DNA from: Lepidodermella squamata
Lineage: Eukaryota > Animalia > Gastrotricha
DNA length: 64,000 nucleotides
Reading direction: 5' to 3'
NCBI GenBank assembly: GCA_047495785.1
Contig: JBLDXI010000001.1
Span: 1,612,001 to 1,676,000, forward strand
The notes beneath the pieces are model-generated. The model was given only the letters and a program-made list of their open reading frames with translations, made no database searches and had not been told where the DNA came from. Shown here one piece after another: positions 6,081 to 24,962 of this stretch. Position 1 is the stretch's first letter; each line of letters starts with the position of its first letter. The translations under genes were made by a program, and so were the position numbers.

Positions 6081-6233
6081 TTCTCCTGGGATCATTCAGT
6101 GCTGCGTTTTTTTTGCCTGGTGCACGACTCGTGAACAGGCGCAATTAAAATGCTATATTTAGGCTCATATTATTTGACGGACACACTGTACATCAGATTT
6201 CGTCTCATGCTATGAAATGAATCTCTCTAACAG

Positions 6234-6760
6234 TCTCCGGATGTCTCCTCAAAGAAAGCAATTATAGATCTGTTTGATCAAGCTATTGCTGTCGCGAAAC
6301 CAATCGCTGATAAATATCAAAACATGGGTTGTCTTTCGTTCCTGAACTCAAGGCGAAGCAGCTTTGCTATTCTCGCCGCTGATTTTGGTATTTTCGCATG
6401 TACTACTAAAAAAACATGTGCGGATCTCCAAATTATTACCGTTCCGAAAGACGTCTGCGCATCTGAAATTGATGTGGATATTCTCGAAATATTAAAGCCA
6501 CTTAAAAATGTGAGTTTTGTTTTCTTACCAATATTCAATATTTTTCTAGCGATTTTCCCGAAAATTATCAGCTCAAAGTCGCGAAATGCTGCTCTTCCGA
6601 TTTGTGCAATGTCGCCGCAGCATTCAATCAGACGGTTCCTTCCAATGACACGCTGGGAATGAAACGTATTAGCGCTGCGAATGGCGTTCCGATATTCGTC
6701 CCAATAATATCACTCGCAGCCTCCTCTGCCTTGATCATGAACTTCACCCCAAATCTGTAA
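6234..6760 (+). CDS. Ly6/uPAR-like (helical-insert) gene X, exons 2-3 only (6234-6509, 6572-6760), probable GPI tail; exon 1 absent from the window
   Basis: Exon 2 SPDVSSKKAIIDLFDQAIA.. aligns with exon 2 of the gene at 10681. Exon 3 reads LKVAKCCSSDLCN..., then a hydrophobic C-terminus. Confidence 0.7.
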
Positions 6761-7206
6761 CGTCACTCGCCTTTCAAAAGGCGCAACTTGTAGGGCCGAT
6801 AAATTGCCGATAAAAAGCATGCAAAATGAAGGTCGAAAGCAATAAACATTGTCAATTGTTTTTTCCCTCGCAAATGTATAGTAACCACTATGTCCTATCA
6901 TCCTATCATCCTATCCTATCGGTTACGGAGAAATTCCAATGTCAAGTTGGTCACGTGACCTTAACTGACGTCACACCTGAGCGGTTTAATCTGGAGAGTG
7001 GTGACAGCTAGGAAGCGGCTTTCAAAGGAAAATTTCATCAGCATGAGTTTCAGGAAAGTTTACCGACGAATACACTCTTATAACAAATTCACGGTCAGAA
7101 AATGCGCCGCGAATTTTATTCACGAATTTAAGCGGTGGATATTCTGTGAGTACTATTGCGCTGAAGCATTTTGCAGTTAACAGTTTATTGTTTATTCGAA
7201 ATTTAT

Positions 7207-8769
7207 TCACATTTGGTCATATTCTTGCGTGATCTTCTGACAAGTCGCAAATACCTGCTTAACATCGTCCGTAGACAAAGTCGAGTTGTACACGGAAAGG
7301 CAGGCAATTGAGTTGCTTGGAGAAAACTGCAATTCGCCCTGATTCAAAGCCAACCCGGTTGAAACTTGGCTAACCTTAACCGTATATGGGAAATCTTTTG
7401 GGATAGGATGATTTTCGACCAAGTGATTGCCGTTGCTATCGAAAATGTTGATTGCCTGCAGCTGTTCGTCGAATTGAATAGCCACTGATAGCAAGCTCCA
7501 ACCATTCTGAACCATTATAGGAAAATCGCCAATAACGCTTTTATCGTTCTTGCTCTTGCTGCTTTCAATGCGAAGCAAGTTAGGCTGAATGAAGGAGAGG
7601 TAAACCGATTGGTAGAAAAGCTCAAAGTTGAAATAAGTCACAATGCTGCTGTTTTGCGAACCGTAAAAAGCGAAATTTGTTGTGTATTTCGTTCCAAGTG
7701 CTGAATCATATGAACCAAAGTCTGTCCAGGCGTTGAAAAGACCGCCCGCCGATGTTATTGATGTCTTAGTCACACCGAAGGGGCCTGTTATTTTTGATAC
7801 TTTGCCGTCATTACCCATGTATCCTCTTCTAGCGCTGCCCTGAGCTTGGCTGTTGTAGCCGAAGGCAGCGTCGAGAGGCCAGGAGGCAATTAAGGTGTCC
7901 TGTCGAGGCATCTGAGCTACCTGCACGTTGCTGCCAACCGTGAATGCTTGACATCCATCGAAAAATTGCTTGGCCTGTTCACCAGTTAGACTTGCGTTGT
8001 AAATACCCAAGCATGCCATGGAGCCTGTTGCAACAGGAAAACCTTGAATGTAGATAGAGTTGCACCAACCCCACGGGTTCCAATCCCCACAAAGCCAGTT
8101 ACCCATGGTGACTTGCTGGGTTGAACTCAAGGAACTGGCTAGTTGAGGTGCCGAGACCGGACCACCGATAAGGCTGCCATTGCGGTCGTAGACAGAAAAA
8201 GCCTTACCGTCATAAGCGACAGTGACAAAAGCCCATTTCATTGGCTGAAATATGCCAAATTTAGCCAGCATCACGAATCCATTAGTTCTAGAATATGTAG
8301 CAATAGTGAGGTTATTGGGATATTCGTAGCTGATCCAAATTCCAGTGTAGTCACCAACAGGCATGTTTATGTAGACCAAATTTGCCGTGACACCAGTGTT
8401 GCTGTCGTATTTGAAGGCGAAAGAAGCTGTAAACGAGTTGTTTGTCTGAAAAACAGGAACCTCCGACATGCCATCGCCGATTGATAACAGAGGGGTTTTC
8501 GTTCCGTCCACATTTGTCGGTAACATTAGCGAAAAAGAAGTGTTTGGCTGGCCGAAAGGGCCCAGTTGTGGGTTCGCCTTGCTGTATGCGCACGATGGCG
8601 TGACTCTGTTGTTTCCGCCAAAATCAACACAATCATGCTTCAGCGTCAATGGCCAGAAGCCGTACAAGTTTGCCATCAGTGGCAAATTCGGGCGATCGGC
8701 TGCTTCACATGGTGAACAGGCGAGGAAACCGATAGCAACGCAGGCTGCGAGAAAGTAAAAACCAGCCAT
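7207..8769 (-). CDS. Intronless secreted protein with two LamG/ConA-like (pentraxin-like) domains
   Basis: Signal peptide MAGFYFLAACVAIGFLACSPCEA. Two repeats of L..WPL..GPFG..FT..F..W..V.V..D..S.ACL..YN..L....KQ.F..CQ. Confidence 0.8.
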   Translation of the reverse strand: MAGFYFLAACVAIGFLACSPCEAADRPNLPLMANLYGFWPLTLKHDCVDFGGNNRVTPSCAYSKANPQLGPFGQPNTSFSLMLPTNVDGTKTPLLSIGDGMSEVPVFQTNNSFTASFAFKYDSNTGVTANLVYINMPVGDYTGIWISYEYPNNLTIATYSRTNGFVMLAKFGIFQPMKWAFVTVAYDGKAFSVYDRNGSLIGGPVSAPQLASSLSSTQQVTMGNWLCGDWNPWGWCNSIYIQGFPVATGSMACLGIYNASLTGEQAKQFFDGCQAFTVGSNVQVAQMPRQDTLIASWPLDAAFGYNSQAQGSARRGYMGNDGKVSKITGPFGVTKTSITSAGGLFNAWTDFGSYDSALGTKYTTNFAFYGSQNSSIVTYFNFELFYQSVYLSFIQPNLLRIESSKSKNDKSVIGDFPIMVQNGWSLLSVAIQFDEQLQAINIFDSNGNHLVENHPIPKDFPYTVKVSQVSTGLALNQGELQFSPSNSIACLSVYNSTLSTDDVKQVFATCQKITQEYDQM

Positions 8770-8864
8770 TATTAATAAATAGGTGAGAGAGCAATTGTTA
8801 TTGCTGAGTTGGGTATTTATAGGCATTTTATCTCCCGACGCTTTATCTTAATTACTCTACTTAG

Positions 8865-8923
8865 TAAGTACTTAAGAGTCCGTTATTTAAACTCGACTTT
8901 AATAACGGACCCTTAAGTACTTA
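8865..8923. repeat. 59-bp near-perfect inverted repeat (hairpin)
   Basis: TAAGTACTTAAGAGTCCGTTATTTAAA-ctcgac-TTTAATAACGGACCCTTAAGTACTTA, with one mismatch and one bulge. Confidence 0.85.
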
Positions 8924-9189
8924 ATGCACGGGGTCGCAGTGTGAGAGTAGGGTGAGAAATAACTCGTTTTAACAAGTCCAGGTGATACCAAAATGTGGGT
9001 TAATTAGGTGACCCTCCATACCAGCGCAAAGGCCAATAACTGAACCGCCAAAGTAGCCCCTCTTTAAATTCTTCTGACCTCACAAATCATAGAACAAAAA
9101 AGTCTCTGAAGTATTCGCTTTTCATGTTTTTATGACAAAAAATGACAAAATGATTTCCACGATATTCGGAATGACGAAGCAACGGCGCT

Positions 9190-9920
9190 ACTTGGTGACC
9201 TTCTCGTCTTGCTTGGGCGTGCATACAGGGGAGAACTTGGATATGAAAAGCGGAAGTTCTTGTTCAACTGGAGTAGGCCAACGCCGTTTTCGTATGTGCC
9301 GCCTTGAGTAACACTCGAGGTTAATTCTAGGGATTAAAAGACTCGTTTACTCTTGTATTTGCCGTGGACGACCATGGGGGCCTCAATAGTCAATAGTGAA
9401 TGGAGTAACAGCGCCTTCGTCGGTGCGACCGCTGTACATTTTGTTGGCGAAGACCTTGATGAGGCGGATGTTTCGGTTCTTGAAGCACTGCGCACTGGCG
9501 GCGATGTAGCGTTGCCGATGATGGCTCCGCTGCAGACTTGCCTCGACGTTCGATGTTCGTAGCTTGAAGTTCGTTATGAGCCGAGGAAACACAGCGGAAT
9601 CTGCAAAAACCAGATTTCAACAAAAGAGGATGAACATTTTGAAAGAATTTTACCGTTTTCTTGACCACCAACCAGGCGAACGGCATCAGTCTCGCTTGCA
9701 CTCTCAGACTCGACATGTTGATCGGCTGCGGCAACTTCCTCTTCGCCTCCAGTGATTACACAGCGCTCGCGGACGAGGTATTAGCGTTATCAGCAGCCTC
9801 GGTTTTATCAGCTTCAGCGTTATCAAAATGCCCATTCAGTTATTTCCATACGAACTGTGTCTTCAGCATGGCCTTGCAGCGGCGGCCGCATTGATACTTG
9901 GCGTAGTCCTTGATACCCGC
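9190..9920 (-). pseudogene. Degenerate trypsin-like (S1) serine protease homolog
   Basis: Minus-strand pieces in different frames: YQCGRR, ITGGEEE, MPFAWLVV, CSGAIIG/RYIAASAQCF (cf. CGGxII..W.LTAAHC), MVVHGKY..GTYENGVGLLQL and FSPVCTP. Frameshifts and intron remnants (9602-9653) are present. Confidence 0.55.
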
Positions 9921-10680
9921 AAGCGTTCGGAATCAGCAACAGATTCAGGGGCGATGAAAAGCCGCTAGATTCATTGTCGATCTTAGTAGCATCTGTTTCC
10001 TCGGCTTAAAGAATAGAAAAAAAAAATAAAATCGGTTCGACTTCAGATTCACGCTAACCTAAAGCTTTCTATGCCTGCTAAACCGTGGTGTTTATTTTTA
10101 AAATGAATGGAATAATATCAGTTTGGTGGCTTAATGATGAAAGTATTATCGTGAAACGCTGAATTTCAGCAAAGGAGTCGCAGCTGAACTCGGACGAGTC
10201 GTAGCTGATTGCTGATTTGAATGCGTAATTCAATCAGGGCTTGTGACGTGGCTCATGCTCTAGCCAGGAATCCGAATTAAACTTATTTTGTTTGTTTATT
10301 TAGTAAATTTACAAGGAATCGAGAGACTTTGAATTCGTTATTATTAATGTTGGTCATTTTATTTCATTTCCAGTCGATCCAATTACTCCACAAACAACTT
10401 ATTGCTAGATAGAAACCTACAGCGGCTAAAGACTTAAGTTTCCCTTTCTTGTGAAGCGTGACGGAGCGGAAAAATGGAAATGAAACGAGACAGTCTTTCC
10501 AGTCTTCCATCATGTTCCCAAACTTCCAAGCCATTAAAAGAGCAGACAATTGTTACCAGGAAATGCGAGTTCAGACTAGTTTTATGTCCATTTTATGCTT
10601 ACGATTTTATAAGTCTGTTGAAAAAACGGCTCTTCTGCATTTCAATATATTGGGGTTTCAATATTAGGTACCACGAAAAA

Positions 10681-11508
10681 ATGTTGAGGCTGATTTTCAC
10701 TTTTGCCACTGCCTGGTTGTTTTTACATGAATGCAAGGTTTCAGCCTTGGAATGCGCCGCCTGCCCTCAACACCCTGACATTTCAAGAACGACTTGCAAG
10801 CGAGAAGAAACATTACCTATCACATGCAACCTTGGTTTGCAAAGCAGATGTGTGGTTTGTCTTTACATTTTTAAGGCGGGCGTTCTCTTATGATTTGAAT
10901 ATTACAGTCTTCAGACAGGAGTGCTAAATTGACCGCTATCGAACTCTATGATCGAGCCATCGCCGCCGCTATCCCTATCTCCACCCGGCTGGGGAATACT
11001 GATGGCTGTGTCCCCTCTCTACAAGCGTATCGGGATACCATGAAGAGCATGATAGCACCGGCGGGTTCGGCTTATTTTGGATGTGGAACGCCTCGGCATT
11101 GCAGCAGCTCAATGCCAGAATATTTTTTCTTTAACAGAGATGCCTGTCCATACAAAAGTTACAAATCAATTTTGAGAATACTGCGGCCGTTAGCAGACGT
11201 AAGTGATTCATTTTCTGTGTTTTTTTCAAGTTTGATGAAATTCGTTTTGCTAGCTAAAATTTGAGAAATGCTGCTCAACAAACATGTGCAACAGCGGTTT
11301 GGAGGTTTCTGGGCGCAAAACGGCTGATTCTCGTAAAATTTCGGACGAAATGACGCTGGAATCGTCGGAGGAAATGTCACCGGGGGAGGAGGATTACGAG
11401 GAAGATGGAAAAGAAGAGGCTGCCCAGGAAAATTCAGCTGGGAAGGCAGTCTGCTTCATCTCAGCAATTTCAAGCAGTCTTTTCTCGGCACTGCTTTTGA
11501 TTCTATAG
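10681..11508 (+). CDS. Ly6/uPAR-like (helical-insert) gene Y, GPI-type; exons 10681-10854, 10908-11198, 11254-11508
   Basis: Signal peptide, LECAAC...CCSTNMCN, an acidic stalk and a hydrophobic C-terminus. Both introns are phase 0. Confidence 0.8.
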
Positions 11509-11944
11509 CGGTATAATAGATACAGAATAACTGATGGATAACTTTCTTTGACGAGAGAGATGGAATAAATTTATTAACTATCGAACACATTTTTAACTGG
11601 CGAACAAGGTGCATACAGTATTTGTTCCTATAGCATCCCGGGATACTAAAATTTCAACCTCGAAATGTTGATAAGTTTGACAACATGTTTGGCGTTCATT
11701 TATGATGTTTTTGAACCGACTTGGCCTCTCAACCTGGGCAAATATTGAAAACATACGCGGTAATGCTAAGAAAATTTATTTCCAAGAATTAAACACCTTA
11801 ACTGCTCATCATCAGTTGCGTTGATTTGGCGGTACTTCTGTTATAAAATAAAGAGCACTAGTAGGGGAGATGTAAAAACTGGTCACGAGATCAAGAAAAC
11901 AAAAACTATATTGATGAATCAGTTCGGCGCAGATACGCACTTTA

Positions 11945-11978
11945 ATGAATGAGCAGCACGCGATTCGTTCCACGCGAT
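11945..11978 (+). promoter_or_regulatory. Conserved upstream block of LU genes A/B/C (also at ~14053 and ~16341)
   Basis: ATGAATGAG(A/C)AGCACGCGATTCG(T/A)TCCACG(C/T)GAT lies 60-140 bp upstream of each ATG. Confidence 0.5.
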
Positions 11979-12035
11979 CAACATTTTCTATTATTCTACC
12001 GAATGATTTTCTACAAATCAATTTACAATAAAACT

Positions 12036-13191
12036 ATGCGGACGTTGCTTGTCTTGGCTGTTATTGCAGCGCTGTTATTCAGAGGACAAGTGATGTCCGT
12101 ACGATGCCTTGCCTGCGCACCCGCCGCTGTGGACCATTTGGGTAGGTGCCGCGAACACGAAACCACCACTGTCACATGCCCATCTTCGGCCGACCAATGT
12201 GGGGTAAGAAAGCTGTAAAATGCTTGAAAATTACTACAACCGGAACTCTATTTACAGCTATCACACGATGTGGAAGATTTGTTCAAAAAAGCCTATCAAG
12301 AAGCCTCTGGGAATTGTGCTGAAATCCTCCGCAAGGCGAGCAAGCAAATTCGCTCCATGTTTCCTTCCGATCTGAAGTCGTTCAAATGTGCCAACGCTCA
12401 GCTTTGTAATGGCGGAACGAATTCCGCATCTATACTGTCGACAGTGCTCGGAGGTCATTGTCCTAATGATGTCATCCGAATTTTAGAACCACTCGAAAAG
12501 GGCGTAAGTTTACTTGCTGATTTAATGACGTGCGCGCCAAGAAAAGGTAATAAAACAGGCCAATAATAAAAACTTTCCCATCTGCTGTCAGTTTCATCAT
12601 ATTATAAATCGTCAAATGTTAACTTTTCTTGGCGTGCATGCAATTTTGTCGACCGGGTGGGTTTGATTTGAAAAGCTTTGAAAAAATATTTCTTCTGCCA
12701 AGTTTATTTATACCATATTGTACAGCAGTGAGTCTTTTTTCATGTTGATTTCCGTTTTCATCTTTTGAAGGGCTTGAAGTGTCGCGGAAGTGATTTCTGT
12801 AATGCTCCCAACAATGCTGTTATTGAAGGATCCTCTTTCGGCGGCGTTACCTATCCAAGCCCCCAGCGCGAAGTGGGCCTCGTGCATGATCGGCAAGTAG
12901 TGTTTAAAGTTTGGTTTTAGCTTAGATACGCAAGTGGGAAATACGCAAGTGGGGGTAATTCGACAGGGACAGGATGAAGGATGGCGAGATTACTTGCCAA
13001 AAAGAGAAGAAATCGAACAATTTCTGAAATACCGCGTTCTCAAATACATCACTCCCGAAATTCGCACCCAGCTTTATATATTTATGCTTGCTCGACTTGT
13101 GATTTTTGGTGTCTTAATGCTGCTATTAGGCTTATGGATGACGAAGAGGATTCAGTGCCTCGAGATTGTGCGTCGTGGATTGTCATTTTAA
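12036..13191 (+). CDS. Ly6/uPAR-like gene A, TM-type; exons 12036-12203, 12258-12503, 12771-?; 3' splicing uncertain, possibly degenerating
   Basis: Near-identical to genes B and C in exons 1-2. CC is changed to CR (CRGSDFCN), and an in-frame stop at 12918-12920 precedes the TM-coding segment unless it is spliced out. Confidence 0.65.
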
Positions 13192-13360
13192 AGTCAGTTA
13201 TGATCGAAGCCAAATAAAAAGTGCTCTTCAAAGCTGGTTAATAACTGTCACGGGAAAAACCCGTCTGCTTTTGTGTTCAGTTAAGAAGAATTTTGTGAAA
13301 AAGGGTAGCTCAATAAAAATTAGTTTAATGATTCTCCAGTTAACTGAACCTTTCTTGTCA

Positions 13361-13556
13361 GCTGAAAATTAAATAAGCTGCCTGACAAAAATGTGCGAAA
13401 GCATGCACGTTGAAGGCCTCAAGCTGAGAAATTGCTGGATCTAATGCAATTTTGGACGAAAGGACGAAGGAATCGGAGGAAGACAAATATTAGAGGCTGC
13501 CCGGAACGATTCAGCTAGGAAAGCTAGCTGTTTCATCTCAACAATTTAATTCAGTC
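13361..13556 (+). pseudogene. Decayed copy of exon 3 of LU gene Y
   Basis: Aligns with 11254-11480 (e.g. gaggctgccc.g.a..attcagct.ggaa.gc...ctg.ttcatctca.caattt) and contains stops and indels. Confidence 0.65.
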
Positions 13557-14190
13557 GTGAATAAATAAAATTTGGTGAAATGTTTTGTGAATTTTGTGAT
13601 TGATATTTCGCATAAATTCGTGGCTTTGTGAAGCTCCTCTGAAGGTTCCAGTTGCTTCCAGTTACAACTTGCTACACTGGAATTCGTTTTTGCATAAGAC
13701 AGTCATTTCTTAATTATTAAAATTATTTTTAAACTATTTTACACCTGGAGCGGATTTTACCTACTAACCGGTCTTCGTTCTTTCTCTCAAAACCGTAGTT
13801 CAAAGCACACCCGCTTCTGTCATGTGACGCTTTCTGCCTGAAAATATTTCGTTCGAATTATCATTTCTTAAATGCTTCATGCAGGCTTTGAGGTTGAATT
13901 TCCGAATATTCGTGTTTTGTGTCTATGGCAAAAAATGGAGGCAATACATCGTCCGCCAAAATCTATACGTCACATTTCTTCGTTTTTCAAGGCTCAAAGA
14001 TTCAAGTAATAATCACTGCGCGAAAAATAAGGGGTCTCTTTTCCATTCATCTATGAATGAGAAGCACGCGATTCGTTCCACGTGATTTGCAAAACTCTCG
14101 CGCTCTCACAGTTTTTGCAATCACAATTCGCGATTAATATCAGTTTTTTATTCCGCCGAAAGAGTTTCGAATTCGATGTACAATAAAAAC

Positions 14191-15310
14191 ATGTGGACGT
14201 TGCTTGTCTTGGCTGTTGCTGCCACGCTGTTATTCAGCGGCCAAGTGATGTCCTTACAATGCCTTGCCTGCAAACCCGCCGCTGTGGATTCTCTGGGTAG
14301 GTGTCGCAAAAACGAAACCACCACTGTCACATGCCCATCTTCGGCTGACCGATGTGGGGTAAGAAAGCTGTAAAATGCTTGAAAATTACTACAACCGGAA
14401 CTCTATTTACAGCTATCACACGATGTGGAAGATTTGTTCAACGATGCCTATCAAAAAGCCTCTAGGAATTGTGCTGGAATCCTCCAAAAGGCGAGCAAGC
14501 AAATTCGTTCCATGTTTCCTTCCGATCTGAAGTCGTTTAAATGTGCCAACGCTCAGCTATGTAACGGCGGAATCAATTCCGCATCTCTACTGTCGACAGT
14601 GCTCGGAGGTCATTGTCCTAATGACGTCATCCGAATTTTAGAACCACTCGAAAAAGGCGTAAGTTTACTCACTTATTTGATGACGCCAAGAAAAGGTAAT
14701 AAAACAGGCCAATAATAAAAACTTGCCCAGCTGCTGTCAATTTCATCAGATGAATCCTCAAATTGTACAATTTCTTGGCGTGCATTCAAATTAGTCGAAC
14801 TGATTGGTTTCGACGAGGATTGAACAAGCAATTTTTAGTTTAAAATTCTACAGCTATGAAAAACATTTCTTCGGGTAACTTACTCAATACCATCTATATG
14901 TGATTTTCAGAGTTGAATTAAACGTCTATTTTCTTGTTTTGCAGGACTTGAGATGCTGCGGATGGGATTTATGTAATACTCCAATTACTTTATTCAGTTA
15001 TCCGTCTTCGGCAAAGACTGGCGAAGGATTCGGCGAAGGATCCGTCTTCGGCGGAAGCTTGATAACACCCCAGAGCGCAACAGCACTGGTCCTCGGGCAA
15101 CATGATGAAGAAAGCGAAGGAGATCACGTCCAACTTCTCCCATCGAGAAACCGAAAATTACAATTCGAGCAATTAGAAATTCTACTAATTGCTCGAATTG
15201 TGATTTTCGGTGTCTTAATGCTGATATTTGGCTTATGGATGACGAAGAGGATTCCGTGCCTGGAGTTTGTGCGTCGTCGGTTCCCGTTTTTGAGCCAGTT
15301 AACCTGTTAA
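14191..15310 (+). CDS. Ly6/uPAR-like gene B, type I TM; exons 14191-14358, 14413-14658, 14945-15310
   Basis: Signal peptide, LQCLAC...LRCCGWDLCN, stalk, TM helix and a basic cytoplasmic tail. Confidence 0.85.
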
Positions 15311-15483
15311 AGGCCATCATTACTGCTTGACGCTAACTATGACTTGCTCATCAAAACCGGTTAATAAATGTCAGAGTGAATTCCAGTCTGGTTTTGTGTT
15401 CAATGTTGAAAAATTTTGTGAAGAGTCGCGCAATAAAAATTAGTTTATTGTTGTTCTCAATTAAATGAAATTTGTTTCGCCAG

Positions 15484-15565
15484 CTGGGAAATTACGAAAT
15501 GCTGCTCGACAAACATGTGCAACAGTAGGTTTGAGGCTTCAAGGCGGAAAATTGCTGGACCCAGT
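15484..15565 (+). pseudogene. Second decayed copy of the 5' part of exon 3 of LU gene Y
   Basis: cag|ctg..gaaatgctgctcgacaaacatgtgcaacag matches 11254-11294 (KCCSTNMCNS). Confidence 0.65.
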
Positions 15566-16477
15566 GAAGTAACAAATAATTACGAAGTAGTGAGCAAGAT
15601 GCATAGCGCTGATTAATTTTCATTGCAAAAATCAAGGCCCTATGAATTTATTACTTAACCGGTAAAAAATTTGTGAAAAAAGTTTGGGAATTTTTGGGAA
15701 TTTTGTGATTTATTTCACATGAATTCCTGTATTTCTGAATTTTCGTGAACCTCCTCTGAAGGTTCAAGTTGCTGTTTACAGCTAGACCCTGAGAAGCTAG
15801 GATTCATCATATCGAGCTGCAGCATTCAATGAGAGGCCTTGGCAGGAAGTTGCAGCAGATATCAGATGAGGTTAGATTCCGTTTATCACAACATTTTGTT
15901 AACGATTGATTGGCCTCCTGCGCCTGCGCCCTTTTTTCGATTAAGCTGAAATGGGACCTTTTCGCAATTTTTGAATGCATTTCATATCTATGTTGAAGAT
16001 GATCAACGATCAGAGATCAGAAATATTTTGAAATTCAAGCTTCGTTTCCAGTCAATTCTTTGCTTGCTGCCAAATCAACGCAACTGATGAGGCTATAGTT
16101 CGCTCAATTTCTCTCTAATCGTAGCTCATAAAACACACCCCCTCGTTCATGTGACGTTTTTATCTGGTTCGATTTATCATTGCTTTGATGCAGAGGTCGG
16201 GCTGAATTTCCGAATATTCGTGTTTGTGTCTACGACGAAAGATCGGGGCAGTCCTGCGTCCGTCAAAACCTACGTCGCTTGCCTTCGTTATTAAAAATAC
16301 GTAATAATCCCTTTGCGAAAACGTGTTCTCTCATTCATCCATGAATGAGAAGCACGCGATTCGATCCACGCGATCTTCAAAAATTACGCGTTCTCGCAGA
16401 TTTTGCAATAATTCGCGATCAACAACAGTCTTTTATTTTGGCGGAAGAGTTTCTATAATTCAAGTTACAATAAAACG

Positions 16478-17744
16478 ATGCGGACGCTGCTTGTGTTGAC
16501 TATTGTTGCCGTGCTGTCATACAGCGGCCAAGTCATGTCATTGCAGTGTTCTGTCTGCAAACCCGCCGCTGAGGATTCTCTGGGTAGGTGCCGCGAACCC
16601 GAAACCACCACTGTCACATGCCCATCTTCCAATGACCAGTGTGGGGTAAGAAAGCTGTAAAATGTTGGAAAATTACAACCGGAACTCTATTTACAGGTAT
16701 CACACGATGTGGATGATTTGTTCAAAAAGGCCTACCAAGAAGCCTCTGGGAATTGTGCTGAAATCCTCCGCATTCTGAGAGAGCAAATCCGTCCCGTGTT
16801 TCCTCCCGATCTGAAGTCATTAAAATGCGCCAACACTCAGCTATGTAATGGCGGAACGAATTCCGAATCTCTACTGTCGAAAGCGCTCGGAGGTCATTGT
16901 CCTAATGATGTCATCCGAATTTTAGAACCACTCGAAAAGGGCGTAAGTTTACTTGCTGATTTAATGACTTGCGCGCCAAGAAAAGGTAATAAAGTAGGCA
17001 AAAAAAATAAAATATTTCCCAGTCGTCGTCGCTCGCATCATTGAAATCCTCAAATTTTTACTTTTCTTGGCGAGCATGCGCAATTTTATCGACCTGTCGA
17101 TGGCATCTAATTAAACGAGGAATTTAATAAAAAATTTAAAGCTGTGCAAAATGATTTCTTCGGCCTAATTACTTTATCCATTAAATACAACACCAGAAAA
17201 GAATGGGTGACAAAAAATCGGACTTTTAGCTTGTGAAATCCTCTCAATCAGGGCCCTGTGAGTATCCTAATTCACGGATTTTCAAAATGTATCTGAATTC
17301 ATGCCCAAAATCACCCTAAAATTCATCTACAAAAATGCAGGTATTTCTACTGAAAGCATGAATTCAGATACCGAAACTAAATTCATGCTTTCGGTAGATA
17401 AATTAGGGTGTCTATTTTCTGGTGAACAGTTTTTGCTTTTCAGAGTTAATTAAACCGCCCATTTTCCTATTTTGCAGGGCTTGAGGTGTTGCGGAAAAGA
17501 TTTCTGCAATGCTCCTACGGGCAATATACCCCAAGTTTCCCTAGCAGAAATAGCTCGAACAGAACAACCGCCAAGAAACGACTCTATCGAACGACGAAGA
17601 GGTGTCTTCGACGAATATTTCTCTCCCGAAATTCGCGCCCAACTTTTCCCATTTTTATTTGCTGGACTTGCGATTTTCGGTGTCTTGATGGTGACATGTT
17701 GTTTATGGAAGACGGAGAGTATTCCGTGCCTGCGTCGTCGGTAG
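16478..17744 (+). CDS. Ly6/uPAR-like gene C, type I TM; exons 16478-16645, 16697-16942, 17478-17744
   Basis: Paralog of A and B. LRCCGKDFCN, then a TM helix and a tail ending CLRRR. Confidence 0.85.
17191..17424. mobile_element. Non-autonomous CACTA-like MITE in intron 2 of LU gene C
   Basis: TIR CACCAGAAAA...TTTTCTGGTG with AA on both sides (2-bp TSD). Absent from the equivalent intron of paralogs A and B. Internal hairpin at 17346-17398. Confidence 0.75.
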
Positions 17745-17979
17745 CGCAAGTTAAATGCCATTTTTGCTCGAAGCTGAATGAAAATTGCTCACTTGGAAAC
17801 TAGCTAATAATAATTTTCAGTGTCAAATCTATTGCGTTCAGTGTGTTGAAGAATTGTGTGAGAGGTTGCGCAATAAAATTCAGATTATTTAGGTGACGTA
17901 ACAAAAAATGTGTGTTCTTGCAGTTTGATGCGAAAACTCTCATTCGAATTCAATTTGCAATTTTAATCTAAAATTTAAA

Positions 17980-18752
17980 ATGCTTTTTTCAATCTGCACA
18001 GTCTTTCTGTTGTCGGGAATGGCCAGCGGAGTTTCGGCTCTGAACTGCCTCGCCTGCAAAGCCGGAGCGCTTAACGATGTTTCCTATTGCAAGCAAATCG
18101 AAACGTTTCAAGTCACCTGTCCTGATCACCTGCATCATTGTGGGGTTGGCTGGAATTTTTCTGTAATTTTTAAAAATTTAAAAATTTATTTTAACAGGTA
18201 TCAGAGAGCCCGAGCAGAGTCGATATTAGGCGGAGTTTCACCTTGGCCGCCGAATCAGCCTCTAAATCGCCAGCTCAAACCTGCGCCAATGCTTTGACTT
18301 CAGTCCGCGATCACATGGACGCCTTCATTCCGGCCAACGTTCACTGGTTCGGCTGTGCGTCGGCTCAAATTTGCGAGGGAAAATCCGGAGCAAAGGTGCC
18401 TATTTCGAGTTTAATCGCCCCGATTTGCCCGGCTCGTGAGTTTCCTGAGGTTCTGAAAATCTTACACGAACTCCAATCAAAGGTTCGTTATGATTGAATC
18501 TAATTATATTTTTAATCTGATTTTTTAATTCGATAGGCTTCGATCAAGTGTTGCTCTTCTGGCTTGTGTAATTCTGTGGCCGGTAATCCAAGCGAAGAAG
18601 TTGGTCCGATAATTATTGTTGATACGAACGAAAATCCAAATTTTGATGATGATAAACCAACCAAAAATTGTTCTCTGAGGATCGCGCCTTATTTCTTTAC
18701 TTCAATGTTGTCCTTCGTGCTCGTCGGTATGGTATCACTGTTTTTTCAATAA
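17980..18752 (+). CDS. Ly6/uPAR-like gene D, GPI-type; exons 17980-18144, 18198-18482, 18537-18752
   Basis: Signal peptide, LNCLAC...IKCCSSGLCN and a hydrophobic C-terminus. Confidence 0.85.
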
Positions 18753-18923
18753 ATAATAAATGGGTGACTTATAATTACAATCCTTCGCCTTTTTCGCATG
18801 GGTGGATTCAATGCGAGTTGAATGAGTGGGATGTACTCCGTATTTCACGCAATATTTCGTTGAAAAATGGCAATTATTTTATTCATTCTAAAAGCAATAA
18901 TTATCGTAAATTTCTTGTTATAC

Positions 18924-19169
18924 ATGGCAGCTTTCGGTCGTTTTCTTCAACTGCTGGTAATTTCAGCAATAGTCCACTTTCAAGTTTCAGACTCTATGCC
19001 GATGATTTTATCCGAGTCGGAAATCGATAGAAATTTGGCGAGAATCACGTCAAACAACGAAGCAGCCTACTTGAATTCGCTCGGTACGGACGGGGAGGTC
19101 GAGAAAGGATGGTGGGAACTGCGGCAAGACCTAGCTGAATCTCAGCTGATTGCTGATTTGATTGCATAA
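18924..19169 (+). CDS. Small putative secreted acidic peptide (81 aa)
   Basis: Signal-like N-terminus MAAFGRFLQLLVISAIVHFQVSDS, coding-like composition, AATAAA at ~19228. Confidence 0.45.
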   Translation: MAAFGRFLQLLVISAIVHFQVSDSMPMILSESEIDRNLARITSNNEAAYLNSLGTDGEVEKGWWELRQDLAESQLIADLIA

Positions 19170-19615
19170 CTAATATATGAGCCTCTGGAATATGTCCCTT
19201 ATCCCTTATATGCTTTTGCATCACAAATAATAAAATTGGAAGTTGGAAATGTCACTTTCGGATTTTTCGGAATTTTTCACGCATGGATGAATTCGCGTGA
19301 TATTCGCAGACACTTAATTTTTGTTTCATTTTTTTGGGGATAATGCCAAAATGCCACCTTGCGCAGTGTCTTGGGCTATGAATTAATGTTGGTGTGCCAA
19401 CAATTTCGCTTGAGTGAGTCTTCTTCATCTTTCCCACGAGGTCGATTACATAATTAGCGCCCTCAGGTGCGCTTTGAGGTCGCACAGCAAAAATTGACCA
19501 TTAAGTAGGACTGGGTTATAAATTCGTCCGTTAGCTCTGCGCAACGTGATCTTACCTTTTTTCATAATTTTTTGTTATCAAATTTCCAACTTTGGCCGCA
19601 TTTTGCAACGAAAGA

Positions 19616-19983
19616 ATGAGAGCAGTTGTGGTTACCTTGCTCATCGCTGCCTGTTTCGTGGCGGCATTTGCGAACCCCAGGAGCGCTGGAGCGAGGTATG
19701 GCGATGAAGGAGCTGGTCTTCAGGCGAGACAAGGTTAGCATTTAGCATCGTATTTTATTCGAAAATCTCTGATTCTGCATCTCTAATTTTTCCAGCATTT
19801 GTCGGTACCTGGAATCAGGATTTGTTGGCAGCTCAATTGCGCGGCCAAGAGCAGCGTCAACGTGCCAAGAACAAGCGTGGCAACGTGGAACGCGATGATT
19901 TTGCGGGCGAATGGCGTTTCGACGACACTTTCCGCTACGACAAAACGCATGCCCATGAAGCTGGTGTAGATAATCAGTGGTGA
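19616..19983 (+). CDS. Small secreted prepropeptide (101 aa), missed by the ORF track; exons 19616-19733, 19796-19983
   Basis: Signal peptide MRAVVVTLLIAACFVAAFA, phase-1 GT-AG intron, dibasic site RAKNKR, TATAAA at ~19518 and AATAAA at ~20091. Confidence 0.7.
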
Positions 19984-20404
19984 CCTGTAATACCACAAAT
20001 GCCGCCATCACCTGTTCAAAAAGAAACAATTCGAAAATTAATATGACATGATTCATTGTAGACATGATTCTAAATAACGAAATTTCAAGGAATAAAAAAT
20101 TTAATTAGCAAAATCCGAAATTTTTCACGAATTCAGGAAGGGAAAATGTGGCCTCGCCTTATTTTAGGATTTTCCGATTATTTTTTTATCCCTTTCGGTT
20201 TCATTCATTGAACGCGAAATTCAGCTGAACCGAACGTGAAAGTAAAAAATAAGCGGCATGAATAAAAAAGGTGCAAAATCCTCCGCGCCCTCGGATAGTC
20301 CTTAATTTGCCCGCATTATCTTGTGCATAAGTAATCTTCTGTCCTAATAATGTGGGAACGCGAAAATTTTTTCCTAGATATTCTTATATTAGCAATTAGC
20401 AACA

Positions 20405-22429
20405 ATGCTTCAGAACTTAGCCCGATATGCTACGGTTTATTTTCTGCTACTGTCTCCATGTTTGTCGAAGATTTCCCGAAGATCTTCTGGCGATTATTTA
20501 AATAAATTCGATGAAGAAATTGTTGGTCGAGACGGCTCTATTCGCGCCTCGAAACGGTGGGACTTGTTAACTTTCTTCCGGCAAAAGCTCGATGAAAAGC
20601 GAACGCGAGATGACAACACTTTGGACAAATGCCGGCATGACCTTAATGAAATCTTCCCAGAATCAAGCCAAAACGACTGTCTAGAACCAGACCCAGTGAA
20701 AACGTACAAAAACCCTGTAACGGGTGAACAAATTTGGCGGGCAATTCAGTATCATAAAGGATTACGCATTTGGGGCGGTAAAAGTAAGTATAATATTTTC
20801 TATTTTTGAAAAAAAATTCAATTATTTTTCCTGTATTTAAGCCACGGCTACATTTAGCGTTGACCCTTTTGGCAATAAAAAGAAATTAACCAGCGCTCGA
20901 TCAAATTTGGATGTTAAATCATCTTCAGCCCAAGGGTTCGATACTGATCCTATTTCAAGTCAAAAAGCATGCGCAGACTTTTGGGGCTATACCAGCGATT
21001 CGATAATCCGGCATACCCTGGAACGAGTTTGGTTTGTTGCTTTTGAAACCGAAACTAACCCTTTAGAATACCATGATTTGATATTTATCGACGGATTCGA
21101 GTCAGCTATCCGCCATTCTTTCAGCGTAGCTTGCCTAGTCAAATTGCCTACGTTGGAAATCGTTGCATCTTGGCGAGTTTTTGATGGTCTATACGGCGAG
21201 GGTGGGAATGAAAAATCGGGGATGACGATATATGGCGTGAATTACCCGGATTTACCTGCTGTCGTGGTTGATGGAGATCGGTGCGAAATGACGTCATCGT
21301 TCGGAATTTTATCAGTCTACCACGCCCAATCGACCCAAAATCGAGACTGGTCTACATTGTCCCCAATTCAATACAAATGTAACGAAGGATATCCGGTAAA
21401 AAAATCATTAATTTTGGAATATTGGAAAGCCGAAAAATCCATTTTAGGACTCGGTTAACGGAGCTTACGGTGTAGCGAGCGATTGTTTTTACAATGCTGA
21501 TCGAATTCTCGCCATGTTTTTCGATGAAAAGTGGTTCGGTTTCGATTCTCGGTTCAAAATAAACGAATGCGGCCGAATCAATGTGATCGCCCACTACGGC
21601 AATTCATTCGAAAATGCGTTCTGGAGTTCTAGCGATTGCGGTTTGTACATTGGGGATGGAAACACAGAGGTATAAAAGTGTGATTTATAATATCAAGCTC
21701 AAAAATTGATTATTTCCACCCAGTTTTACCCGCTATGTGGCTGCATTGATGTAATAGGTAGGGATTTTTTCACCAATTTTCGCCCATTTTATTTATTCAA
21801 TTTCAGGTCATGAAATGGGTCATTCCTTGACCTCTGTTCGGTCGAAATTGATTTCAAGTGGCGAATCTGGTTGTATAAATGAAGCTTTTTCTGACATGGT
21901 CGCTGAAGCTGCTGAATACTACGCCTACGGCTCCAACGATTGGCTGATTGCCCGTAACTGCGTGAAAAATGGCGAGTTCACGCGAAATTTAACCCAATTC
22001 GCGTCATATTTGGATTATCGACCAGAAATGGGTATAGGTTCATCACTTTTTTCTAGATTATATTGATGGATTTCTTTTACCCATAGCTCCCCATGAATGC
22101 AGTTCGATATTTAGCTACGGTTTCTATCGCTTGGCTACCTTACCCAGATGGGACGTGAATCATGCGATGCTGGTATTTTTCGTCGCGAATTCAGTCGCTT
22201 GGACTGAGGTGAAAATGTTTTTTTTTTAATTTTTCAATGTTTGTTTAATATTTTTTATTTACAGACAACTGACATGCGGAATGGCTGGTGTTTATCAATT
22301 TTAGCAGCTCATAAAATCTCGAATTTGAATCCTATCTCAGACGCTTGCGATGTGCAATACATCGGAACAATTATCGGAATTGACTGCTCGTCGCACGATT
22401 CCGTTGCCGATATTGTGAAAAATTGCTGA
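20405..22429 (+). CDS. Secreted peptidase M4 (thermolysin family; pseudolysin/vibriolysin-like) preproenzyme; exons 20405-20783, 20842-21395, 21448-21669, 21724-21757, 21807-22031, 22087-22208, 22265-22429
   Basis: Signal peptide and propeptide, then GEGGNEKSG..YG, VNGAY, HYGNSFENAFW, GDG..FYPL, GHEMGH, SGCINEAFSD, APHECS and FYRLA...WD. All six introns are in phase. Confidence 0.9.
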
Positions 22430-22749
22430 ATGAAAGAATAATATAATATTACCCATTGGTTCCAAAAAGTGTTTTTTTGCATAAAAAATCCCTCTCTTCC
22501 ATGAATACCTGTAATTGCTGAGTGCGAAGGAATAAAACTCATTAGTTTCCGCTTATCGCGAACACTTACTGAGGTTGCTCGCATTGATCAACACTAAATC
22601 TTCCATTTTCCGTGCGGAAAGGTCAGAACTAATTGAATTTGAATGACTTCCATACTACGCTCTTAGAATTATTAATGATTTTCAACTCAGTTTAACACAA
22701 ACCACGGCCGACAATATCAGGCAGTACTCTGTAATCTATGTAAAAAAAA

Positions 22750-23451
22750 ATGAATTTTTCCTTCATTTTCGTGCTTTTATTTTGGTATTATGACCAAGTT
22801 ACGAGCTTGCAGTGCTACTCCTGCGAATCAATCGGGGCGGCAAATTCGACAGAAACCTGCCAGCAACATGAAGCCATTCAAGTCACTTGTCAAACCTCTG
22901 ACAGCCTTTGCTCGGCTTCGAAAATACTCTCTGATGAGCTAGTGAGAAAAAAATTGGACGAAGCGATCGCGATTGCTACGGCTGTTGGAGCCACAATTGG
23001 AAACTCGACTTGCGAGAAGGTTTTATCAATTTCGAGGGATAAAATACGCGAATATTTCAGCCCAATCAACGCCAGTAGCTATTCATTTGGCTGCGCGTCT
23101 AAAGTCTTATGTGACAGCTTCCTATTATCGACAATCATCTCGCCAGTTTGCCCCGCCGAACACTACCCGGGAGTGGCGAGAATTATGCAGGATATCGAAA
23201 GCTCGGTACAGTTAGACTCAAAAGGTAACGCTACGATTGTTTCATTACTTTTTACTATTATACAGGCCGAGTTGATTTGCTGTTCGACTGATTTTTGCAA
23301 CAAGTACGGAATCCCGACGCAAATACCGTTTTACTTACTGATAATGCTCCTTTCGTTCCTAATTTTTGTCTATCTAAAAATCGCAGCCTCGAAAGTATGC
23401 CTTCAGAGAACAATTTTGAGAACTGATTCGATACTTCGACAAAGCATTTAA
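22750..23451 (+). CDS. Ly6/uPAR-like gene E, TM-type; probable in-frame intron 23206-23265
   Basis: Signal peptide, LQCYSC...LICCSTDFCN, TM helix and tail. It lacks the first intron found in its paralogs. Confidence 0.85.
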   Translation: MNFSFIFVLLFWYYDQVTSLQCYSCESIGAANSTETCQQHEAIQVTCQTSDSLCSASKILSDELVRKKLDEAIAIATAVGATIGNSTCEKVLSISRDKIREYFSPINASSYSFGCASKVLCDSFLLSTIISPVCPAEHYPGVARIMQDIESSVQLDSKGNATIVSLLFTIIQAELICCSTDFCNKYGIPTQIPFYLLIMLLSFLIFVYLKIAASKVCLQRTILRTDSILRQSI

Positions 23452-23720
23452 TGAATACAATTTTCGATCATTTGTTTCGCCATTTTCGAATTTTAATTGT
23501 GTCAATAAAATAATCGAAATCGCAAATTTTTTAATCTTATAACCTAACCTTATAACCTAAATGGAGCATCCTTTTTATCATTTCATGATAAGTTATCAGC
23601 AATGAGAAAGGTCTTCAGTTATAGATAGCCCCAAAATGCTACGCAATACCCATTAAAAAAGGTTGATAAGGTCTTCTAAAATTGCGGTTCTCTCCACCCG
23701 GTTTTCCCACTCACGAAAAA

Positions 23721-24269
23721 ATGACCCGCAACGGTTTTTTCAAATTCGCGATTTTAGCAGCAATTTATGCCGCTTCAACCTTAACGGTGTCTGTTGAAGC
23801 AGTTGGTTGTTACATCTGTAGCAACAACAAGTTAGGTTGCAACTTCCACGCTGCTATCTACGACGCGAATGGCTGCAATCAGAACGTAACTCGTTACGCG
23901 AGATGCATGTACGGCCCAGCTCCGGATATCGACGAAGCTACAATTGTTATAAAGCAGACCCTAATTACCACTGAAGCCCTGAAGTCTGATGATCATAATG
24001 TCACAGATTGCGTCAAAGCCCTTACCCAGGCTCAATTTTACTTCTTCTCCGAACATTTCCGCAAATTGCCGCTTTTCACCTGTGGACCTTCAGCGCTATG
24101 CGGAACCTCCCCGATTTTCGACTCTATGTGGGCAATGGTGGAAATGTCCTGCCCGCTGCCTTATTTCCAACCAACCTATGACAGCCTTACCCTTATTGAC
24201 GCAGTTATGAAACTTGAATGCTGTAATGAAGACGGGTGCAACCGCGATCCTAACGCTTGCATTGGTTAA
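23721..24269 (+). CDS. Ly6/uPAR-like gene F, intronless, soluble (no anchor)
   Basis: Signal peptide, VGCYIC...LECCNEDGCN, and a stop 9 codons later. Confidence 0.8.
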   Translation: MTRNGFFKFAILAAIYAASTLTVSVEAVGCYICSNNKLGCNFHAAIYDANGCNQNVTRYARCMYGPAPDIDEATIVIKQTLITTEALKSDDHNVTDCVKALTQAQFYFFSEHFRKLPLFTCGPSALCGTSPIFDSMWAMVEMSCPLPYFQPTYDSLTLIDAVMKLECCNEDGCNRDPNACIG

Positions 24270-24312
24270 GAAAAAATTCATGCGCCTTAATTGATTTTTT
24301 AATTAGGGAAAA

Positions 24313-24962
24313 ATGATTGCGAATTTGATTATTTTTCTCGCATCAATTTCGGCCTCAGCTTCTTTGGTATGCAACGTGTGCCCGGAAAATTCTGGGACAT
24401 TGGGCTGTGCCAGGATTGACACTACCCCTATACCATGCGAGACTAAGGCAGAAAAAAGCGATTGGCCTCGATGTGCTGTGAGTCGAATAATTTTTAAGGA
24501 GGAATAATCAACAAATATTTTTATTAGTACATGCCGCATCCTGACCTACAAAAAATCAACGACGTGTTTGAAAGCATTAAAACTGTACTACAAGCATCGC
24601 CAGCTAATCAAAGCAGCATTTCAATGTGCATCGGAGCTTTGGACGTTGCCGAGAATAGTGTCCTAATTCCTAGCCTGCCCACCCAAAATTTGTACCGATG
24701 CGTCAGTGGCCTGATGGAATGCAATGAGAATGGCTTTATTCGCAAGGTTCAAGAGGCTGTTTCCGAGCCGTGCAACGACCCGGCCCTGCCGAGTATTACC
24801 GACCAGCTCGATAGGCTTGATCCGCATCTTAAACAAATGTGTTGTAATTACGATTTCTGCAACCACGAGACTAACCCGGCTCCACCGTGCAGCGCGTCGA
24901 GCACGATTTTCGCCAGTTTTTCACTCATTTTTCTGGCATTCATGTTCATTGCAAATAATTGA
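24313..24962 (+). CDS. Ly6/uPAR-like gene G, GPI-type; exons 24313-24477, 24528-24962
   Basis: Signal peptide, LVCNVC...MCCNYDFCN, then SASS and a hydrophobic tail. Confidence 0.85.

Follow-up and report, generated by a model that had tools for sequence, protein, structure and literature searches.

Can the three-finger domain of Ly6/uPAR (LU) proteins exchange two of its beta fingers for helical hairpins and still keep its cystine frame? This question is raised by an array of nine paralogous genes at positions 6234-24962 of a 64 kb stretch of DNA from the gastrotrich Lepidodermella squamata (contig JBLDXI010000001.1; the whole stretch is hereafter called the window). The three-finger domain is among the most reused small binding scaffolds of animals and occurs in snake toxins, complement control, nicotinic-receptor modulators, sperm-egg recognition and TGF-beta receptors. 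To our knowledge, its variation has so far all been in the length and sequence of the beta loops. An initial annotation of the window, made from the sequence alone, read the array as LU proteins with amphipathic helical insertions in fingers II and III and one extra cysteine in each, and proposed a bundle of helices stapled by a sixth disulfide. Here we examine this proposal by gene modelling, homology searches and structure prediction. The variant of the Ly6/uPAR domain that the array encodes is real, new and lineage-restricted; the bundle and the sixth disulfide, which are its most interesting feature, are so far predictions.

A profile of the family was run against the six-frame translation of the whole window. 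It gave nine matches, all at 6234-24962, in agreement with the nine members first annotated, and found no further member in the other 39 kb. All nine genes lie on the plus strand and are named, in their order along it, X, M2, A, B, C, D, E, F and G. Gene models were made by three-frame reading and inspection of splice sites. Signal peptides and tails were judged from the sequence: the former by hydrophobic N-termini, glycosylphosphatidylinositol (GPI)-like and transmembrane tails by a C-terminal hydrophobic tail or a transmembrane helix with a basic tail. In the homology searches the multi-exon members (X, M2, A, B, C, D and G) were used exon by exon, joined sequences serving for the cysteine census and the substitution analysis only.

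Complete members share a frame of twelve cysteines with spacings of 2, ~10, 9, 6-12, 20-35, 23-26, 5-6, 12-17, 17-22, 0 and 4 residues, in a cysteine-rich domain of 126-148 residues. Ten of the twelve occupy canonical Ly6/uPAR positions (C-x2-C...C...C...C, C-x5/6-C, CC-x4-CN) and the sixth and the ninth are the extras. The canonical order, with its C-x2-C start and CC-x4-CN end, is found in M2, B, C, D, E, F and G. The two exceptions are those noticed at the outset: A has CR for CC by a change of one base (TGT CGC at 12780-12785), and X lacks its N-terminal part. No C-x2-C exon-1 pattern was recognised upstream of X, where a doubtful, decayed remnant of exon 1 lies near 6100-6160, and X is probably a truncated copy. 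The LU-type skeleton of the initial annotation is thus confirmed, and signal peptides and hydrophobic C-terminal tails accompany it.

Each of the nine window copies has both extra cysteines, and so have at least six other copies of the genome and three relatives from metagenomes. When 14 copies with 9-40% identity were aligned, the sole invariant columns were four cysteines of exon 2, two of them the extras, which upholds the early claim of one extra cysteine per insertion in spite of low identity. The first extra lies 23-26 residues ahead of the next canonical cysteine; the second, usually as 'CP', lies 17 or 22 residues ahead of the CC pair. The insertions had been sized at 45-55 and 30-35 residues, but these are lengths of whole fingers, and the net gain over a canonical LU domain is ~30-45 and ~20 residues. 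Finger III is also shorter than the raw reading frame suggests, since in A, B and C the stretch after '...EPLEKG' (GVSLLADLMTCAPRKGNK...) is intron. The amphipathic periodicity was recovered as a spectrum peak at 90-110 degrees in eight of the nine copies, but it is modest, with z of -0.3 to 3.7 against shuffles.

AlphaFold2 (AF2) was applied to F (23802-24266) and to the open frame of E, with alignments composed of full-length relatives and exon-by-exon references. The F model has a mean predicted local distance difference test score (pLDDT) of 85.1 and a predicted template modelling score (pTM) of 0.75, with strands at residues 3-5, 19-21, 33-38, 91-96 and 138-141 and helices at 43-58, 67-84, 104-113, 123-129 and 132-135. 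The E model (mean pLDDT 66, pTM 0.62) has the same order of elements, with helices at 44-65, 69-84, 100-112 and 122-133; the 20 residues from its putative intron are disordered, with pLDDT below 50. The predicted strand order is that of LU, two strands for finger I followed by three central strands. In both models fingers II and III are predicted as helical instead of as beta hairpins, with helices in place of the tip of finger II and of most of finger III. The insert helices reach a pLDDT of 92-98, and the inserts pack as one four-helix bundle. As predictions, then, the helical insertions and their bundling both hold. The extra cysteines fall in the first turn of helix 2 (F70 and E70) and in the loop that connects helix 3 with helix 4 (F117 and E116).

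The architecture that these models suggest would retain the LU base, that is finger I and the three central strands with the five canonical disulfides of connectivity 1-5, 2-3, 4-6, 7-8 and 9-10. The tip of finger II would have become one helical hairpin and finger III a second, and the four helices would pack up-down-up-down into a single bundle standing on the beta base. Both extra cysteines would lie distally on the bundle, away from the base, a position that fits a mutual bond. The two cysteines beyond the ten canonical ones are invariant and share one end of the predicted bundle; for these reasons, and because the total of twelve is even, a sixth disulfide between them, linking the hairpins, is most likely.

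Comparison with known families places these proteins near the LU clan and outside its described members. Recurrent sub-threshold Pfam matches belong to this clan only: UPAR_LY6 (8 of 32 pieces), Toxin_TOLIP (6 of 32), CD59 (3 of 32), and also QVR and Activin_recp, the last matching the C-terminal motif of E weakly. The best E-value among them is 0.0087. Canonical LU genes, of which the genome has dozens, score 15-27 bits themselves, barely at the cut-off. Named language-model neighbours are likewise all of the LU clan (TGF-beta receptor II ectodomain, UPAR/Ly6, QVR and Activin_recp), their scores of 0.76-0.85 being leads only. A sequence profile search of the PDB returned only chance matches to chemokines (E 0.2-0.5), Foldseek against the PDB a best E of 0.28, and the shape search of the ESM Atlas a best template modelling (TM) score of 0.44. 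The suspicion that the scaffold might be undescribed is consistent with these searches, as no full-length match was obtained in Pfam, PDB sequences, PDB folds, the ESM Atlas or 1.84 billion proteins. The arrangement, an LU domain with a four-helix bundle and an extra cysteine pair, is absent from every sequence and structure library searched. From the motifs, the cysteine order, the protein architecture and the predicted strand order we file the family with high confidence as an LU derivative outside every existing Pfam family.

The genome (121.2 Mb, 151 contigs) was searched with the family profile. Sixteen matches were obtained: the nine in the window, two at 3-4.5 kb upstream of it, four on contig C19 and one at 65 kb downstream. 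The array therefore has nine members as annotated, but the family is larger. One of the copies on C19 (C19:2783469-2783621 and flanks) carries a Pro/Gly-rich low-complexity insert of ~50 residues (PPGGPPGG...MGPPPTG repeats) between the first extra cysteine and the next canonical one, and the loop past helix 2 evidently tolerates more insertion.

When 1.84 billion representative proteins were searched exhaustively with a HMMER profile, only three true relatives emerged, P0001, P0002 and P0006, which come from metagenome assemblies of another organism and keep all twelve cysteines. P0001 is ortholog-like to F, and P0002 and P0006 are relatives of G. Their contigs are eukaryotic and have similar neighbours (sushi-ankyrin, carboxylesterase and ANF-receptor genes), and the F-like and G-like genes are adjacent on them as in the window. 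The contig with the F-like gene carries no E-type cluster; directly upstream of that gene, at 9447-9854 of the contig, lies a small cysteine-rich gene that is Kunitz-like by eye. Four other HMMER hits (TPR, LRR or PNGase proteins) were rejected since they match one helix only. Metagenome contigs of the Joint Genome Institute (JGI) were scanned with an F-type and with an E-type pattern, and no relative was confirmed by either scan. A word-based search of 5.8 billion protein clusters found nothing with E and nothing with the family alignment; this negative says little, since P0001 is in that collection and was not recovered. Judged from these sequence searches, the family is lineage-restricted, with ~16 genes in the genome.

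Taken together, we slightly favour a joint reading in which a lineage-restricted LU subfamily has helical hairpins that would form a four-helix bundle, held by a sixth disulfide, in proteins acting as surface or secreted binding modules. Several results weigh against it. Only one of five F models reached a pLDDT of 85, the other four remaining at 70-72; in E the model of the beta base is poor (pLDDT 46-65); and the alignments behind the models are shallow, with 24-26 rows, many of them exon fragments. None of the LU-clan models of Pfam (PF00021, PF00087, PF17064, PF25152) reaches its cut-off, the best being UPAR_LY6 at 16.5 versus 24.8 bits. When the family was compared by hhalign with six of the genome's own canonical LU genes, the alignment was confined to CCxxDxCN (11 columns) and sLxCxxC (9 columns), and Foldseek, VIA-align and the ESM Atlas returned no three-finger structure.

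The rival explanation that survives best accepts the helices and disputes their bonding: the extra cysteines might pair with canonical ones, stay free or bond between chains, and the inserts might be mobile helical arms in place of a single packed bundle. The spread among the F models, the pTM of E and the middling Z of the bundle matches in the fold comparison all leave room for it, and the further odd cysteines past the domain in F/G-type members make inter-chain bonds conceivable. Against this stand the even number of twelve cysteines in complete members with all ten canonical positions kept, the gain of the extras always as a pair and never singly, the constant spacing around both, and their location together at one end of the predicted bundle both in E and in F, which were modelled separately. 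We consider such altered bonding unlikely, though it deserves more weight than the other alternatives.

A second alternative denies the LU origin altogether, and sees an alpha/beta domain, rich in cysteine and of independent origin, that would have converged on Ly6 in its initial CxxC and its terminal CCxxxxCN. Its appeal lies in the sub-threshold scores of all LU models, in the confinement of the profile-profile match to two short motifs and in fold searches without any three-finger match. Convergence would have to account, however, for all ten canonical cysteines in canonical order, for local spacings (C-x2-C, C-x5/6-C, CC-x4-CN) as in canonical LU, for a signal peptide together with a GPI or transmembrane tail, and for predicted strands that coincide with the places of LU strands. 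The weak family matches and the named language-model neighbours, moreover, all come from one clan, and low scores are also seen in the genome's dozens of canonical LU genes, which hardly attain the Pfam cut-off. We regard this explanation as quite improbable, and retain the reading as an LU derivative.

The array itself was then considered as a set of genes. Contig joints of the 2015 run X1, which holds exon sequence only, connect 16645 to 16697 and 16942 to 17478, with GT..AG ends, and equal both modelled introns of C to the base; the long intron of C contains bins of zero depth in this exon-only run. Since these RNA-derived joints match both introns, the three-exon model common to A, B and C is right, and at least one gene of the family, C, is transcribed.

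The ratio of non-synonymous to synonymous substitution rates (dN/dS) ranged overall from 0.19 to 0.95, with most values at 0.4-0.8. Among A, B and C, which are recent copies with 10-25 non-synonymous changes, ratios of 0.41-0.95 were obtained for the helical exon and of 0.41-0.78 for exon 1, the value for B versus C in exon 2 being 0.95. Positive selection is unsupported by these ratios, and A, B and C are, on the substitutions counted, under relaxed or fast evolution. In intron 1 (12204-12257, 14359-14412 and 16646-16696) A and B agree at 100% and C is 96% identical to them, whereas the start of exon 3 has a synonymous divergence (dS) of 0.5-2.0, which suggests gene conversion over the 5' half of these three genes. 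Rapid diversification, as initially proposed, is only partly borne out: it agrees with paralogs that are 11-40% identical, but not with the dN/dS of 0.41-0.95 among A, B and C, on few substitutions and with signs of gene conversion. That the array consists mostly of decaying duplicates without maintained function, as the absence of exon 1 from X, the loss from A of one cysteine and, in this haplotype, of the membrane tail, and the dN/dS of up to 0.95 (B versus C, exon 2) might suggest, is highly improbable in view of the intact frames, splice sites and all twelve cysteines in seven of nine copies, the transcription and correct splicing of C, a cysteine frame kept at 11-40% identity and in another organism, and dN/dS values mostly of 0.4-0.8.

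The individual members are listed in Table 1.

Table 1. Gene models of the nine array members (positions within the window)
Gene	Exons	Strand	Cysteines	C-terminal part	Remarks
X	6234-6509, 6572-6760	+	7, both extras included	GPI-like hydrophobic tail	profile E 4e-25
M2	10681-10854, 10908-11198, 11254-11508	+	12	long acidic spacer, then GPI-like tail	
A	12036-12203, 12258-12503, 12771-12920	+	11 (CC to CR)		
B	14191-14358, 14413-14658, 14945-15310	+	12	single transmembrane helix, short basic tail	
C	16478-16645, 16697-16942, 17478-17744	+	12	transmembrane helix with tail	transcribed
D	17980-18144, 18198-18482, 18537-18752	+	12	GPI-like tail	
E	22750-23451	+	12	transmembrane or GPI-like tail	single open frame, probable in-frame 60-nt intron 23206-23265; AF2 model m3ced06c33f2d
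F	23721-24269	+	12, and a 13th near the C-terminus	no hydrophobic tail	single exon; signal peptide; AF2 model m5aa68f3cfe77
G	24313-24477, 24528-24962	+	12, and one more near the likely GPI attachment site	GPI-like tail	

Introns in the window measure 50-62 nt, and those of the family are all of phase 0 with GT..AG ends. Two intron positions are conserved, one 3' of the fifth cysteine and one directly 5' of the CC motif; F is intronless, G lacks the second intron and E probably retains an in-frame one of 60 nt. Tails are GPI-like in X, M2, D and G and consist of a transmembrane helix with a short basic or cytoplasmic tail in B, C and probably E. F, with a signal peptide and no hydrophobic tail, is probably secreted. 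In the assembled haplotype A has a stop at 12918-12920, ahead of the reading frame for a transmembrane tail at 12934-13191. In one contig of DNA run X2 the 65 bases 12903-12967 are replaced by a single C, by which exon 3 joins that frame; gene A thus seems to be polymorphic, with one intact and one truncated haplotype. In the same run the depth at 17201-17400, inside intron 2 of C, rises to ~4180 against ~150 in the flanks, with many loose ends, and marks a high-copy repeat.

Two further features of the coding sequences were observed. F/G-type members, as well as the relatives P0001 and P0002, have a 13th cysteine 6-9 residues past the CN motif (24240-24266 and 24880-24900); in GPI-type members it adjoins the likely attachment site, and an inter-chain bond is possible. 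In M2, exon 3 (11290-11450) encodes a strongly acidic spacer of ~50 residues that separates the CN motif from the GPI-like tail. The spacer is reminiscent of the acidic domain in GPIHBP1, which lies on the opposite side of the LU domain.

Other genes are interspersed with the array. Between X and M2, on the minus strand at 7207-8826, an intronless open frame of 539 residues has a signal-like N-terminus and a match to Laminin_G_3/concanavalin-like lectins just below threshold (25.5 bits versus a cut-off of 27.6). Between D and E, at ~19590-22430, lies a multi-exon gene with the C-terminal domain of a thermolysin-type M4 peptidase (PF02868, E 4e-7). Neither neighbour, the LamG-type secreted protein on the other strand or the intron-bearing M4 metalloprotease, offers a functional link to the cluster.

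As to function, each protein would consist of a signal peptide and the cysteine-rich domain, followed by a GPI-type tail, by a transmembrane helix or, in the secreted form, by no tail, and the variable helix surfaces would constitute the binding face. By analogy with Ly6 proteins, and from the occurrence of tethered and secreted forms and of conserved core positions beside variable helix surfaces, we infer that these proteins may serve as cell-surface or secreted binding modules, for instance as ligand traps, co-receptors or modulators of membrane receptors. It is a tentative proposal, which we place just short of an even chance, that we are dealing with a previously undescribed composite scaffold, made of a Ly6 base, beta fingers turned into helical hairpins and a new sixth disulfide, which arose and expanded in gastrotrichs in tethered and secreted forms.

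If this proposal is true, it would provide a natural case of alpha hairpins replacing beta hairpins inside a fixed cystine frame and show how far the three-finger frame can be remodelled. The compact alpha/beta scaffold would be of interest to protein engineers, and a lineage-specific family of surface proteins would be added to a phylum that is almost unstudied molecularly.

Several known systems come close. With Ly6/uPAR proteins such as CD59, Lynx1 and Drosophila Quiver/Sleepless the family has in common the signal peptide, the N-terminal L-x-C-x-x-C, the ten cysteines in canonical order up to CC-x4-CN, the GPI-type or transmembrane tails and the organization in tandem gene clusters. A short helix is already found in finger III of CD59. 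The differences are a domain of 126-148 residues instead of ~70-95, fingers II and III predicted as helical hairpins in a four-helix bundle, a sixth cysteine pair at positions unused by known LU subfamilies, and scores below the threshold of every LU model in Pfam. Disulfide-braced four-helix bundles are known from the plant inhibitors of pectin methylesterase and invertase (PDB 1x8z, 1xg2_B and 1rj1). The ectodomains of TGF-beta type II and activin receptors (PF08917, PF01064), which are the top named language-model neighbours, represent the three-finger-toxin fold with lineage-specific elaborations of loops and extra disulfides; they are all-beta and belong to receptor kinases, whereas the gastrotrich proteins have no kinase and carry inserts predicted to be helical.

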